From the NCBI GenBank assembly GCA_001179505.1, contig CDMY01000535.1:1-56405 (forward strand): DNA of 56,405 nt. Direction: 5' to 3'. Of this stretch, positions 1 to 5,765 are shown one piece after another; position 1 is the first letter of the stretch, and each line of letters begins with the position of its first letter. The notes beneath the pieces are model-generated. The model was given only the letters and a program-made list of their open reading frames with translations, was not told the origin of the DNA and searched no databases. The position numbers and the translations under genes are program-made. This DNA is from Vitrella brassicaformis CCMP3155. Lineage: Eukaryota; Protista; Chromerida.

Positions 1-281
1 CCCTCCCTCCACCCCTTATCGACACGTGTCGGCCCCCCTCTTAAAACGCGGCTAGCGGTGGTGTGTTCTGTCTGGTCGTTCTTCGTGTGTGTATGTGTGT
101 GTGTGTGGTGGCTACAGTCGTGGGAATCGGCGGACAGACAGACAGACAGAGGTTGCAGATCAGTCGACGAGACGGCCATCTCATTCCACGGGCAGCCAGG
201 CGGCCAAACAGGCAGACAGCCATTTCGAGCAGCCAGCCACTCGAGTAGTGTTGTGTGTATTCTAAGTGAGGTGCGCTATCA

Positions 282-1152
282 TTAAATCTGCCAACCACCA
301 AACAGACAGACAGCAGGCAACACGCAACCAATCAACGTCGTTCAGGGACCACGAGTGCGTTATGAATGCGTACCGGCTTGCACTTGCCGTCCTTACAGAT
401 GCAGGAGTCGACCTCCCATGTCATAAATTGCCCGGGCCGCGGGGGCAATTTGTACTTGTATGAGCCGCAGTACGTCAGGCCTTTCACGCCCTCACAGTCG
501 TGGTCAAACTGGCTACAAGGAGAACCTTACCCACAACGAGCACGACAGACAGACACATCTATGCATCTGTATGTGTATTGCCCGCCCCCGCGCAGTGCTT
601 ACCCCCATCAGTGTTGCCCCTCTGCTTCTTGGTGATGGCCTTCATCTGCTGCTCGGCGGTGTGGATGGCGTCGAGGGCGCTCGTGGCCATCTCTTTGGCC
701 GCCCGGCTCATCTTGTTGGCCGCCACCATCATGGCCTTGGCCTGCTGCACCTGCCCCTGCACAAACGCCGCCGCCCCAGAGCCCTCCGACAACGCCCCTG
801 CACACACAGCACAGCACCACACACACGCGGGATGCACCCCACCCAGATCCAACCATCCATCGCATCTTCCCATGCATCCCGGCCGCACCTGTGTTGCCCG
901 CAGCCATGCCGGAGATTTCGCCGGTGCGGTCCACAAACGACCCCCCTGCACACAGCAGCAGGTAGGACAGCCACATATGAGCCAGGAGTGATGGGTGTGC
1001 CGTAGGTCTGCCTCCCTCTCGGAGCCAACCGTTAGGGACCTACCGTCGGCAGGGCAGTCGTATCCCTCCTCACAGTCGCCGCGCGTGGCCGTCGCCATGG
1101 CCACTGCCGATGTGGCCGCCAAAGCGATGAGGAGCAAAAACTTGGTAGCCAT
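282..1152 (-). CDS. Small secreted cysteine-rich protein, copy 1 (5 exons, ~180 aa)
   Basis: Phase-compatible splicing gives MATKFLLLIALAATSAVAMATATRGDCEEGYDCPAD|GGSFVDRTGEISGMAAGNT|GALSEGSGAAAFVQGQVQQAKAMMVAANKMSRAAKEMATSALDAIHTAEQQMKAITKKQRGNTDG|GSPCSQFDHDCEGVKGLTYCGSYKYKLPPRPGQFMTWEVDSCICKDGKCKP|I*. It has a hydrophobic signal peptide, and the same exon layout is present in the paralog at 1868-2761. Confidence 0.75.
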
Positions 1153-1867
1153 GCCCATCATCGCTGCCAACAAGCTCTCGGAGAGAGATCTATGGGGAGA
1201 CACGCCCCCGCCGCAAATTTCATCTGGAATCTCCCCCCTTCGGCGGCAACGGCCTTGCGAGGATCGGAAGATCACGGGGTCTTCGGCCCCTGCCGTACAT
1301 ATTCATCCCATCACGCTCTGAGACCCTCATCTGCCCTCGAAGCCGCGGCGAAGAAGCGCCGGTTTTTCCACCATCCCATCAGCTTTTCGCGTCAGCTCCC
1401 ACCTCTTCCACGACTCCCTGCCCCTTCCAGAGGTCTTCAGCGCTTCCCCCGCAGCCTCCCCCTCCTGGATCTATTGCTCCTGACAACGTTTTCCATCAAG
1501 CCGCATCACATGAGAGCCCCCTCAGAGCCTTTTGACTCAGCGCGGGGCGGCGGGGCGGCGGGGCGGCAGAGGCGGGCTTTGTTCTTCCTGCGCAATGGCC
1601 AGCCGCCACGAGTCTGCCCAGCAGCCGAAGGCCGGTTATTTGGCACCACGCTTCGTTGTCAGCAACTACTGTACCGTCCAAGGCGGGTGCTGGCGATGGC
1701 ATCGACGGACGGCCACGGGCACCAGACAGCAACGGCCAGCCGCAGAGCGGCTATCAACAGAGCGGCCATGAACAGAGCAGCCGCAAGAACTCCGCTTGTA
1801 TCGCGATGTGTCTTCCGGCCTGCAGCCGCGTTCGAAGCTACACAAAACGCATCCAAAGACGGAGGGG

Positions 1868-2761
1868 ATGGCTACAAAGTTTTTGCTCCTCATCGCTTTG
1901 GCGACCATATCGGCAGTGGCAATGGCGACGGCCACGCGCGGCGACTGTGAGGAGGGATACGACTGCCCTGCCGACGGTAGGTAATGGTTGGCTCTGAGAG
2001 GGAGGTAGATCTACGGCACACCCATCACTCCTGGCTCATATGTGGCTGTCCTACCTGCTGCTGTGTGCAGGTGGGTCGTTTGTGGACCGCACAGGCGAGA
2101 TCTCCGGCATGGCTGCGGGCAACACAGGTGCGGCCGGGATGCAATGGATGGGCGGATGCGATGGATGGGTGGATCTGTGGTGCATACCCGCGTGTGTGTG
2201 TGGTGCTGTGCTGTGTGTGCAGGTGCGTTGTCGGAGGCCTCCGGGTGGCATTTGTGCAGCAGCAGGTGCAGCAGGCCAAGACCATGATCGTGGCGGCCAA
2301 CAAGATGAGCCAGGCGGCCCACAAGATGGCCACGAGCGCCCTCGACGCCATCCATACCGCCGAGCAGCAGATGCAGCCATTCTTGGGTGAAACGATAGGT
2401 GAAACACTAGGTGATAAGCAATGCGCGGGGGCGGGCAATACACATACAGATACACACATGTGTCTGTCTGTATGTCTGTCGTGCGCGGTGTGGGTAAGGT
2501 GGTCCTTGTAGCCAGTTTAACCACACGTGTGATGTCCTGAAAGACGGAACGAGGTGCGGCTCATACATTCGGCTCGAGCCCCGCGGGCGCAACACTCATG
2601 TCAAGTGCTACTGCAAGAACGCGAGTGCCAGGTACGCACGCCACACACTCTAACACACACATTACATTCACAACGCACCCGTCGTCTCTGACTCTCTGCA
2701 CGACATTGATTGGCTGCGTGTTGCCTGCTGTCTTTTTGTGGTGGTTAGGGATGACCGTTGA
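1868..2761 (+). CDS. Small secreted cysteine-rich protein, copy 2 (possibly frameshifted or pseudogenic)
   Basis: MATKFLLLIALATISAVAMATATRGDCEEGYDCPAD|GGSFVDRTGEISGMAAGNT|...AFVQQQVQQAKTMIVAANKMSQAAHKMATSALDAIHTAEQQM...|GGPCSQFNHTCDVLKDGTRCGSYIRLEPRGRNTHVKCYCKN... The introns are homologous to copy 1. Relative to copy 1 there are apparent -1 frameshifts near 2243-2247 and 2621-2623. Confidence 0.65.
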
Positions 2762-3739
2762 GAAACACTTCCAAGCCAGCGGTGGACCGATAGCGCACCC
2801 ACACCGGCTGTAACTGGCTGGCTGGCATGGATATGGACGATTGATATGTCGGGCCGTCACATAGCCATGCAGTGTGTGGGTGGTGTGTGTGGAATGTGTG
2901 CTGCTGCTGCTGCTGTGGTGTGTGGTTTGTGTGGCTCCATGGCCATGGTTGATGCAATGGACCCATTGCATCCAACCACGCAACGTGATTGCGGACGTGG
3001 CGTATGTGCTCTGGTGCAGTACGTACCATGGACGACGGACATGGATAGACACACACAGACCATAAATACCGCACACGCCAGGTGTTTCAGTCAGCAGGCC
3101 GTCACTGTTACACTCATCTGCAACAAAAGGAAGCCCTCTCGTGTGTGTGCGTGTCCATCTCACTCACCGACACACACGGGGGCTGCTCGTGTTCTATCGT
3201 TTTCCGTGAACCGACACCTCTCTCTCTCTCTCTCTGTCTCTGCAAAGGAAAACAGCAGAGAGACACCCAAGCGTCCACTCATCCACCGATTCCAACGAAC
3301 TTGCAGATCTAGAGACGTGTGGGTGTCTGTCTGTCTGTCTATGTGCTTGTCATCGGCATCGCCACGCCGCCACCGCCATCTGACACACACAATTGTTGCA
3401 TTTATTCGTCCATCAACGAATTCACACGGATGCGCCGGCCGATGACATAGATGGCTCAGCCAGTCGATTGGTGCATGGAGGTTGCTGCTAGCTATCCATT
3501 TTGCGAGCCTCCATTCTTCCCATCCGGGTCGGAAATTGCCGACGAATACCTCCGGCTTCACCGACGGCACGCAGCATAAAGGCACAACAGATTGTCCCTC
3601 TGTCTGTCTGTCTGTCTGTCTGTCCATTCGAATTCTGCTATCCGCGTCTCTCATTCAGTCACGCATACGCCACCTGTCACCATCGCTTCCCCCACTCGCG
3701 TCTCTCACTCAGTCATCCCCCACTGCCCGTCAGTCGCCG

Positions 3740-5765
3740 TCACTCCTTTCGCACTTTCTTCCTTTGCCCGTCGCTACGATCGTCCCTCTTCCTCTTCATA
3801 GCCGTCGGACGGTCCCGGCCACCACCACCACCAGCACGGCCCGTGTCCTCGAAGGGCGGCGACGCGCTGTGGGCCGGAATGAGCGGTGGCGGCATGAGCG
3901 GTGGGAAGTTGACTGGCGAAGGCATCTCGAGAGGCAGGAATGGCGCAGGGGGCACATATGGCTCAGCAACAGCAGCAGCTGCTGCGGCCGCTGCCGCTGC
4001 GGGGGGCGAAGGCTTCTTCTGGCTGCACAGCACAAGACAGAATGAGACGAGAATCGACCAGTAGGCACTCGTCCATGAGTCGATGTGTCTCCTCTACCTG
4101 CCGTACTTCGGTGGCTCCTCGTACTCGTTCTTGTCCTCCTGTTTGGCAAAATACATCGACTCGCCGTCGAATACCCACTTGCGCGGGGGGCTGTCCGCCG
4201 GCTGGGCCACCGCAGCGGCCGCACAGGGAAAAGGTGAGCTCTTCTCCCCCCTAGATACACACAAATGGAGACAAGAGAAAAAATGGGAATACTTGCATTA
4301 AGTGATGTCTGTCTGCTGTGGGTGGGTCTCACCTTTTGCCGCACATGTCTTCGTCTCCCACTGAATACTCCTCTGGACATCCCTTCCCCTTCAGCGCCGT
4401 CGGACGAGGCGGCGACACGGATCGCTCTCGGCCGCCAGCAGCACGGCCCCTGTCCCCGAATAGCGGCGACGCGCGCTGGGCCTGGGCGGGAATGAGTGGC
4501 GGGGGCATGGGGGGTGGGAACATGAACGGCGGGGGGATCTCGGGAGGCAGGAATGGCGCAGGGGGCACATATGGCGCAGCAGCTGCTGCTGCGGCCGCGG
4601 CAGGGCCACCACCGTTGGTCTCCTCGGCCTCAGACTCATTGCCCAGTGCCACGGCCATCTCATGGTCCTCCTCGAGCTGATCCTGTCGTCGGACTTCCAT
4701 GATAGCGTCAAGGAGCTGCCTGCCGTCCTCCCGTCGCTGGCTGCACGCAGGTCCGCGGGGAGCGGGGGCGAACAATCCAGGCGATGGCGGCGGCCGCAGA
4801 TCGATCATCGGCGACAGACCTGATGAACAGAGCAAGGGAGGGACACACACATGCAATAGATACCACGAGTCAGACAGACAGACAGATGGCATGAATTTGT
4901 CTATCTATCTCTTTGCGCCTTTCGTCTGATCTGTCGGGGCGTGCTGACCTTCCTTGTTGCGATTGGGTGTGTGTATGTCGGGGACGGCAGCGGCAGCGGC
5001 AGCACACGGGGAATGCCTGCATGAGCCATGAGGGGGAGAGACAATTTATCCAAAATACACGTGTGTCTCACGCCTCAAAAAGTCCCTTTGCATACTTTGG
5101 GCGCTTGATCGACTCCATACGGTCGTCCATCTTCTGCTCCTTGGCCAGGCATACCGCCTCACGATACCCTCCCACCAACCCCCCCAGCATGACGTATCCA
5201 CTCCCCCCATTCGACTCATCTCCCCGAGACCCACTCACACCGTCGGCGCACTTCGTGCCTTGGCCGAGGTGTGGGGGCTGGATGCAGCCCGCTGCTGCCG
5301 CTGCGGCCGGCTGCCTCTGTCGGCGGGCAGTGACCAGCCGATTCATCTTCTTCTGCAACGGCTCTTCGTCCCCCTTGTCCCCCACCTCGCCCTTGGATCC
5401 CTTCCCACCCACGGCACGCCGGCTGTCCGGTTTCTGTCTTTGAGCAGCAGCGGCGGCGGCTGATGTTGCGCGAGAGGTCTTCTTGTGCGCCTTGGCGGCC
5501 GTGCCATGTCTTTGCTGTGGCCTGGGGTCTTCAGGCCCAGCTGGATGGGCAGAGGTCAAGTCAGCCCCGTTCTGGGACTGTTTGGCAGCAGCAGCAGCCT
5601 GATTGATTCGAATCACAGGCAGGGAGCAAGGACACACATCCCATGAGGGGGCCATGCAGCTTTCATGCATCGGCGTCTCGGCGAGGCCGAAACGCCCATA
5701 TTTGCCCGAATGTAGTGGTCATTCCCTCTCCTTACCTGTGAGCGTGTCACCATCGGGTGCACCAT
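3740..5765 (-). CDS. Hypothetical low-complexity Pro/Ala-rich protein with an internal duplication and a basic C-terminal NLS-like tail
   Basis: Spliced model MVHPMVTRSQ|AAAAAKQSQ...KYAKGLFEA|HSPCAAAAAVPDIHTPNRNKE|GLSPMIDLRPP...DMCGKR|GEKSSPFPC...EEPPKYGS|QKKPSPP...MKRKRDDRSDGQRKKVRKE*. The junctions I checked are phase-compatible. No recognised domain. Confidence 0.65.

Follow-up and report, generated by a model that had tools for sequence, protein, structure and literature searches.

Why should one exon of a gene family change faster than the introns on either side of it? The question is raised by a head-to-head pair of genes for predicted secreted proteins at the left end of contig CDMY01000535.1 (C535) of Vitrella brassicaformis CCMP3155, the 56,405-nucleotide stretch of DNA that we analysed and call the window. 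The six-cysteine module of the family, here called the head, lies in the fourth exon. On balance we lean, by a modest degree of confidence, towards an answer in which gene conversion homogenises the constant parts of the genes while selection-driven diversification of the loops changes the head, as part of a recognition or defence display.

A repeat search of the window finds an inverted repeat, approximately 302–1156 against 1864–2739, whose arms (I1–I7) are 77–96% complementary; for example, 868–1034 lies opposite 1982–2148 at 95%. Copy A occupies 282–1161 on the minus strand and copy B 1868–2761 on the plus strand, and a pairwise alignment over their whole length gives 87% identity. The repeat arms and the alignment together bear out the sequence-only reading of this locus, which had proposed a pair of inverted paralogs. 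The exon–intron model of copy A was built by hand, with the exons searched one by one, and is given below (slashes mark a cleavage site or a splice junction, and a percentage closing a line is the identity to copy B).

1044–1161, minus strand: exon 1, with the start codon(s), the signal peptide (..AVAMA/TATR) and the CEEGYDC loop, read from the translation and ending in phase 1 at GACG/GTAGG; 96.3%.
946–1043, minus strand: intron 1, whose 3′ part holds about 57 nt that are invariant in five close copies; 95.7%.
889–945, minus strand: exon 2 (57 nt), encoding GGSFVDRTGEISGMAAGNT with the family-invariant SFVxRxxEIS, its junctions present in proteins P0001, P0003 and P0004; 94.7%.
798–888, minus strand: intron 2, 86–94% identical among the copies; 89.7%.
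603–797, minus strand: exon 3, encoding an Ala/Gln/Met-rich, heptad-periodic helix; 90.2% in its constant part.
603–640, minus strand: variable tail of exon 3 (its last 38 nt, ..AITKKQRGNTDG), identical in the transcript-derived P0001 and P0002; 39.5%.
526–602, minus strand: intron 3 (77 nt), a conserved island (86–96%) with the junction GNTDG/GSPC in P0001; 89.6%.
374–525, minus strand: exon 4, the hypervariable six-Cys head (C-x6-C-x8-C-x21-C-x-C-x4-C), found at 100% identity as the C-termini of P0001 and P0002; 68.5%, 34 alignment columns being gapped.
288–373, minus strand: intron 4, with donor CCG/GTACGC, acceptor GGCAG/AT and the junction KCKP/I in P0001; 82.1%.
282–287, minus strand: exon 5, six bases (an Ile codon and TAA), matching the end of P0001 (..KCKPI).
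1–281, minus strand: 3′ untranslated region (UTR) and flank of copy A, conserved, with about 90% identity to the copies on C688, C284 and the environmental contig.
1162–1867, no strand: spacer between both start codons, in which only the approximately 30 nt proximal to A match the family and the B side matches no copy.

The Cys exon does diverge faster than the introns that flank it, as had been claimed from the sequence, and the contrast extends beyond copies A and B. Searches of the genome by DNA and, exon by exon, by protein give five close copies: A, B and those on contigs C284, C688 and C147. Among them, introns 1–3 are 86–100% identical, exons 1–3 87–98% and, with C147 left out, intron 4 82–91%, whereas the exon-3 tail falls to 37–87% and exon 4 to 42–68%. 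The conserved 77-nt intron 3 thus lies between two variable coding stretches. In a second pair from another subfamily, C231 (protein P0006) and C356, the introns are 86–94% identical and the two that flank the Cys exon 92–94%, compared with 69.6% for the Cys exon itself. An environmental member on metagenome contig L055 (ENA ERZ893784, k147_1008993, 2136 nt) has its own distinct head exon again, while its constant parts and 3′ flank are 84–91% identical to the family; its occurrence implies Vitrella-like organisms in that sample.

The loop peptides quoted in the sequence-only reading match the exon-4 translations exactly, and its description of the exon needs two amendments. Between A and B the Cys codons are kept, the fifth alone switching between TGT and TGC, but the sixth Cys of B is out of frame. 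The loops are divergent as described, but their rewriting between A and B is partly the product of frame-shifting indels: a GCCCC(C)GCGG string is common to both copies and is read in different frames. Among the readable Cys positions one is replaced (in C284) and one, that of copy B, is shifted out of frame, and exon 4 holds no stop in the six genomic copies or the environmental one.

For copy A, the intron-3 acceptor was set at ...GGGTAAG/GT because the frame closes only there. With this choice exon 4 gains the first Cys and shows the six-Cys pattern, and P0001 and P0002 confirm it; an acceptor at TTGTAG/CC was dropped, as it breaks the frame. In both of these transcript-derived proteins (UniRef/MMETSP) the last 66 residues are 100% identical to the exon-3 tail, exon 4 and exon 5 of copy A, across both last junctions, so the expression and junction support that had been called for exists for copy A from the exon-3 tail onward. 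Upstream of this, the exon 1/2 and 2/3 junctions are those of P0001, P0003 and P0004, and the N-termini of the family proteins P0003 and P0004 match exon 1. Exon 5 has been shortened by deletion relative to the C22 copy, which has a 23-codon last exon. The only genome match to exon 4 of copy A is copy B, which is weakly similar. Copy A looks intact, with its transcript support limited to the part from the exon-3 tail onward; no annotated protein for it was returned in our protein searches.

Copy B is in a different state, as its features show.

1868–1976, plus strand: exon 1; the annotated model P0005 takes a donor 4 nt downstream, at 1980.
1977–2070, plus strand: intron 1, which the C688 copy shares at 100% identity.
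2071–2127, plus strand: exon 2, in a non-family frame in the annotation P0005.
2128–2222, plus strand: intron 2, from the alignment of copies.
2223–2398, plus strand: exon 3, one base short in the G run at 2243–2245 and with an unrelated tail (..PFLGETIG); the annotated donor is ATAG/GT at 2398/2399.
2399–2498, plus strand: intron 3, from the alignment of copies.
2499–2631, plus strand: exon 4, the Cys head, with five Cys in frame; a base missing after 2620 puts the sixth Cys codon (2626–2628) out of frame.
2632–2748 and 2749–2761, plus strand: intron 4 and a short last exon, from the alignment of copies and P0005.

These defects were judged against the in-frame relatives, C147 and the environmental copy. 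One base is lost at 2243–2245, and therefore exons 2 and 3 of copy B are not both readable in the family frame; P0005 bridges this defect through its shifted intron-1 donor and the non-family frame of exon 2. At the position homologous to the intron-3 donor of the family, B has GA. The leader of about 30 nt that A, C688 and C147 have in common is absent from B, the 500 nt upstream of B have no match in the other family copies, and no transcript-derived protein with its exon 4 was returned. Copy B is thus quite probably a decaying partial inverted duplicate; the alternative is that its frame defects are homopolymer assembly errors. Because B probably is decaying, given the defects, the missing leader and the lack of a transcript-derived protein among those returned, the shared bidirectional promoter proposed for the pair is unsupported.

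Does selection account for the divergence of the head? By the Nei–Gojobori method, the nonsynonymous (dN) and synonymous (dS) divergences of the A/B head are 0.33 and 0.17 (their ratio, omega, about 2; p = 0.34) over 30 alignable codons, a count that leaves outside it the central loop, which is not alignable, the loops being hard to align. In the C231/C356 head, over 41 codons, they are 0.30 and 0.54, with an omega of 0.56. In this dN/dS check, which had been suggested for the diversifying selection proposed for the exon, neither ratio differs significantly from 1. Nonsynonymous differences in the head are in three- to fourfold excess over intron differences in both pairs (odds 4.3 for A/B and 3.6 for C231/C356, p about 6e-5 each). 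The replacement change in the A/B head also exceeds the silent divergence of exons 1–3 (p = 0.01). Elsewhere in the gene, exon 1 is under purifying selection (dN 0.01–0.09 versus dS 0.08–0.33) and dN among copies is approximately zero in exon 2. The omega of exon 3 is about 1 in the constant part and about 2 in the tail, in which each pair differs by 5–8 replacement and 0–2 silent changes.

The constant parts have a history of their own. Their 21 parsimony-informative sites support all 10 possible 2:3 splits of the five copies, and at least 14 of the 21 are homoplastic on any tree, where about 2 would be expected by chance on a rough estimate. A and B are grouped at just one of these sites; B has the intron 1 of C688, and its exon 1 is closest to that of A. 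The constant parts are thus reticulate and bear the mark of recurrent gene conversion or recombination between copies, which keeps the introns from being a clean neutral clock. Exon 1, at the dS given above, is more diverged at its silent sites than intron 1 is (0–7%).

In the reading we lean towards, ectopic gene conversion among dispersed copies would keep the leader exons, introns and 3′ UTR about 90–95% alike, while the inter-Cys loops and the 12 codons before the head would turn over fast by substitutions, by indels that keep the frame and by frameshifts that are compensated. This turnover would spare the cysteines and a few anchor residues, a pattern as from diversifying selection on a binding surface. 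Silent states are indeed kept across copies at the anchor codons of the head, namely the rare TGT at Cys1 and Cys2, GGA and CCT; head Cys codons elsewhere in the family are TGT in 17%. These states argue for turnover specific to the loops, not for simple old age.

Several observations weigh against this reading. The within-exon dN/dS is not significantly above 1 in either pair, and in the C231/C356 head the silent sites too have diverged further than the introns (p = 0.02). Part of the contrast could thus be due to escape from conversion or to local hypermutation, with no positive selection involved, and codon bias could account for some of the agreement between copies at the anchor codons. 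Defects occur in several of the close copies: B as described, C688 with an in-frame TAG, C284 with a missing ATG and a broken acceptor, and the copy split over C147 and C22 with an insertion; part of the divergence may thus be decay. The transcript support covers the 3′ part of copy A only, and the two proteins that provide it are mosaics of different loci that may be assembly chimeras. P0001 follows C147 as far as ...AEQQM and then copy A, and P0002 follows C231, then C147, then copy A, with the switch points where the paralogs have long identical strings in common. Transcript-assembly chimeras are the simplest explanation of these mosaics; it is possible that they are real recombinant genes in another strain.

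The strongest competitor, which we nevertheless consider rather unlikely, is concerted evolution alone: the copies would be old, conversion would homogenise their leaders, introns and UTRs, and the head would show its true age under ordinary constraint. The reticulate signal is what such a history predicts, homology among the family copies ends about 30 nt before the ATG, and the head dS of 0.54 in C231/C356, at the omega already given, stands against an intron divergence of 0.07–0.08. An old head, however, should not have kept rare silent states at its anchor codons. Nor does it fit the first 22 head codons of A and B, where 14 conserved residues are without any silent change and the other 8 codons have each changed by 1–3 bases. 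The 77-nt intron conserved between two variable coding stretches also counts against old age, as does the exon-3 tail, where replacement differences are well above silent differences at a normal dS.

A directed process is distinctly improbable in our view, whether it be local hypermutation or a recombination that is anchored in the conserved introns and swaps or rewrites head exons among loci. It would account for the raised silent and replacement change in the C231/C356 head, for indels and frameshifts concentrated in the loops and for the head of B, whose 5′ half is like A and whose 3′ end is like C22/C688. P0001 and P0002, being mosaics, could be counted for it as well, but they switch at long identical strings, as transcript-assembly chimeras do. 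Comparable proposals have been made for conotoxins (PMC3862624). No donor copy of the A head is found elsewhere in the assembly, and neither an enzyme nor a sequence signal for a directed process came to light. The fullest version, in which the conserved introns and UTRs serve as homology anchors for the exchange or rewriting of head exons among dozens of secreted-protein loci, and in which P0001 and P0002 are real products, is a long shot. If it were true, the exchange would provide the alga with a repertoire, carried in the germline, of variable binding heads on an unchanging coiled-coil stalk, with a logic like that of animal receptor and toxin repertoires.

Neutral decay, which takes most copies, B among them, for pseudogenes and their head exon for unconstrained sequence, is the least probable account: it draws on the frame defects, stops or insertions of B, C688, C284 and C147/C22, but the replacement excess of the head over the introns makes it insufficient, since decay cannot outpace the divergence of flanking introns three- to fourfold, and nearly all Cys are kept with no exon-4 stop in seven copies, the head of copy A is present in transcript-derived proteins, and the same contrast is found in the apparently intact C231 gene (P0006).

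Beyond the five close copies, at least 15 further loci have the helix exon, nearly all of them followed by a Cys-rich open segment that ends in C-x-C-x(4-6)-C. When 1.84 billion representative proteins were searched with a profile, 20 matches came back at E ≤ 0.001; all the named ones are from Vitrella CCMP3155 and the remainder are JGI/ENA sequences. As far as these searches reach, this appears to be a multigene family of at least 15–20 loci seen only in Vitrella. The members align in the signal peptide, a C-x(3-5)-DC loop, the SFVxRxxEIS motif of exon 2 and the AQM-rich helix. The public annotation of these genes can be corrected at several points: transcript-supported copy A has no returned annotation, and B (P0005) and C284 (P0008) are modelled with forced frames, P0008 being fused to an upstream open reading frame with non-family splice sites. 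P0004, the protein of C688, stops at the in-frame TAG within exon 3.

The C147 copy has an assembly history that we note separately. The last 57 nt of C147 are the first 57 nt of C22, which makes the two pieces one locus (L005, C147:1398–1592; L053, C22:1–151). An insert of about 289 nt splits its exon 4 after ..CGG TGT AAG; it has 8-nt inverted ends, TGTCAGAA...TTCTGACA, a duplicated GTAAG at its flanks and telomere-like CCCTAAACCC units inside. The annotation P0003 runs into the insert and stops, and the remaining head and the 23-codon last exon are in C22.

What kind of protein would the family encode? The precursor is predicted to run from the signal peptide through the small C-x(3-5)-DC loop and the nearly invariant SFVxRxxEIS to a heptad helix of about 55 residues and then the head, which would be a C-terminal unit of 45–55 residues encoded by one exon and stapled by six Cys. 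Hydrophobic periodicity is strongest at 3.5 residues in all five family helices (shuffle p from 0.0125 to 0.15), and the helix indels are of 7 and 14 residues, plus one of 11; a coiled-coil stalk is a reasonable reading of the helix. AlphaFold2 (AF2) gave an unusable model for full-length P0001, with a mean predicted local distance difference test (pLDDT) score of 44 and a low-confidence helix at residues 65–122. For the head, with a 10-member alignment, it gave a model at pLDDT 81.9 that consists of a short helix, a long β hairpin and a third strand.

The earlier description of a secreted-type precursor with a disulfide scaffold from an unrecognised family agrees with this layout and with the Vitrella-only protein matches, and profile, sequence and fold searches for a well-described conserved family were all blank. 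Pfam gave only sub-threshold noise for the exon-4 translations and 10 family proteins, and a PDB sequence profile search with the head alignment gave no match. With the head model, Foldseek against the PDB found nothing at E ≤ 0.001, an exhaustive structural alignment (VIA-align wide) reached a best Z of 2.6, and the ESM Atlas returned an uninformative best score of 0.77. The label '6-Cys' holds for the module, but not in the sense of the apicomplexan s48/45 family (PF07422), for which there is no Pfam match and whose β-sandwich has about 120 residues compared with 40–54 here. No EGF-like match was found in Pfam up to E = 10 for the exon translations and E = 1 for the family proteins, and no EGF chain is among the fold matches, though small domains score low in such searches. 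The inhibitor cystine knot, whose disulfides pair 1-4, 2-5 and 3-6, has a C-C-CC-C-C pattern that is absent here, with no adjacent CC in 10 aligned modules and no knottin among the fold matches. Of the CS-alpha-beta pattern, in which a helical CxxxC pairs with a CxC on a strand, CxC is present and CxxxC is absent, and the fold searches returned no defensin chain. The automatic UniProt name of a relative, P0015, 'Invertebrate defensins family profile', is a lead only. Two targeting signals were rejected: no Phe-type plastid transit peptide is seen by inspection after the site where the signal peptide is cleaved, and a PEXEL-like reading of SFVxRxxEIS fails for want of Leu at position 3.

The signal peptide, conserved N-terminal region and hypervariable disulfide-rich exon between conserved introns do give the family the organisation of toxin or antimicrobial peptide genes, as an analogy and not as homology. 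A dibasic release site is not conserved across the aligned family members: KKQR is present in copy A and P0001 only, and other members have TKGQ, TKGP or AKGR at this place. The net charge of the head, by inspection, ranges from about −3 to +6. Since head charge varies so widely and no dibasic site is conserved, the layout would be a better fit for a binding head on display than for a cationic peptide that is released. The putative protein would then be a secreted, possibly oligomeric stalk showing a variable binding head, and we suggest with modest confidence an extracellular role in recognition of, or defence against, other organisms.

Known systems share parts of this design. In the precursor genes of Conus conotoxins, the introns of a superfamily are reported to be conserved, and the mature-peptide exon to hold most of the point mutations, indels and positively selected sites (PMC3862624). 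The Vitrella family is like them in its signal peptide, conserved N-terminal region, hypervariable disulfide-rich C-terminal exon, conserved introns, variable-exon indels and multigene organisation. There is, however, no relation in sequence or fold, and the host is a unicellular alga without a venom apparatus; its proteins have a long heptad helix where conotoxins have a short propeptide, and they lack both the conserved dibasic cleavage site and the adjacent CC. MgCRP-I of Mytilus galloprovincialis combines a conserved pre-pro region with a hypervariable mature part, six invariant Cys and preservation of Cys codons (PMC4558851). The likeness there lies in the conserved N-terminal part, the variable six-Cys part, the site-specific preservation of Cys codons and the restriction of the family to one lineage. 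The Cys spacing differs, the Vitrella protein is larger (about 180 residues) and has no conserved proprotein-convertase site, and positive selection does not reach statistical significance in it. EGF-like domains also have six Cys, C-x-C near the end and, as in our model, many β hairpins, but their C5–C6 spacing is about 8 rather than 4–6. With the apicomplexan s48/45 proteins only the number of Cys and an alveolate host are shared, the Vitrella module having about 45–55 residues. In the polydnavirus cys-motif family, exons are known to diverge faster than introns. A protein of that family (PDB 1xj1, the VHv1.1 C-terminal domain) has a small six-Cys domain as well, but its structural match to the head is at noise level (Z 2.5, root-mean-square deviation 3.2 over 38 residues) and there is no sequence relation.

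Some features of the introns and flanks stand apart from the head. In intron 1 the 3′ part (946–1010 in A and 2007–2070 in B), with its 57 or so nucleotides invariant in all five close copies, exceeds the flanking coding exons in conservation, and its last 64 nt are 81–89% identical even in distant subfamilies (C231, C356, C303, C276) whose proteins are about 50% identical. An Rfam search of window positions 1–4000, made for this intron, gave only a chance microRNA match (E = 0.59). Intron 2 contains GGATG-like short repeats, and (GACA)n/(GTCT)n microsatellites recur within intron 3 and flanking the family unit (125–150, 302–313, 2446–2486, 3317–3350 and 3586–3627). The 3′ flank is about 90% conserved over approximately 190 nt (window 1–190) in A, C688, C284 and the environmental contig, and C688, C284 and L055 (L055:801–2136) stay homologous downstream over more than 1 kb. 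A 73-nt piece of this flank (L055:1391–1465) recurs at 80–85% in at least five other contigs, C319, C460 (two places), C223 and C405 among them; ARAGORN, run because of this repeated piece, found no transfer RNA in the flanks. Window positions 1–402 are 100% identical to C341:46367–46768 (L054), right after a run of N, so the left end of C535 probably belongs in the gap of C341 as an assembly redundancy.

In animals, a hypervariable disulfide-rich exon between conserved introns characterises the genes of venom, defence and recognition. Here the same gene logic appears in a free-living photosynthetic relative of the apicomplexan parasites, a coral-reef alga, with a six-Cys module that is new and has no known fold match. 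The five close copies and their environmental relative make up a compact system for separating gene conversion from diversifying selection. The finding suggests that, in this lineage, secreted proteins diversified in an arms-race or recognition-type manner before parasitism or independently of it.

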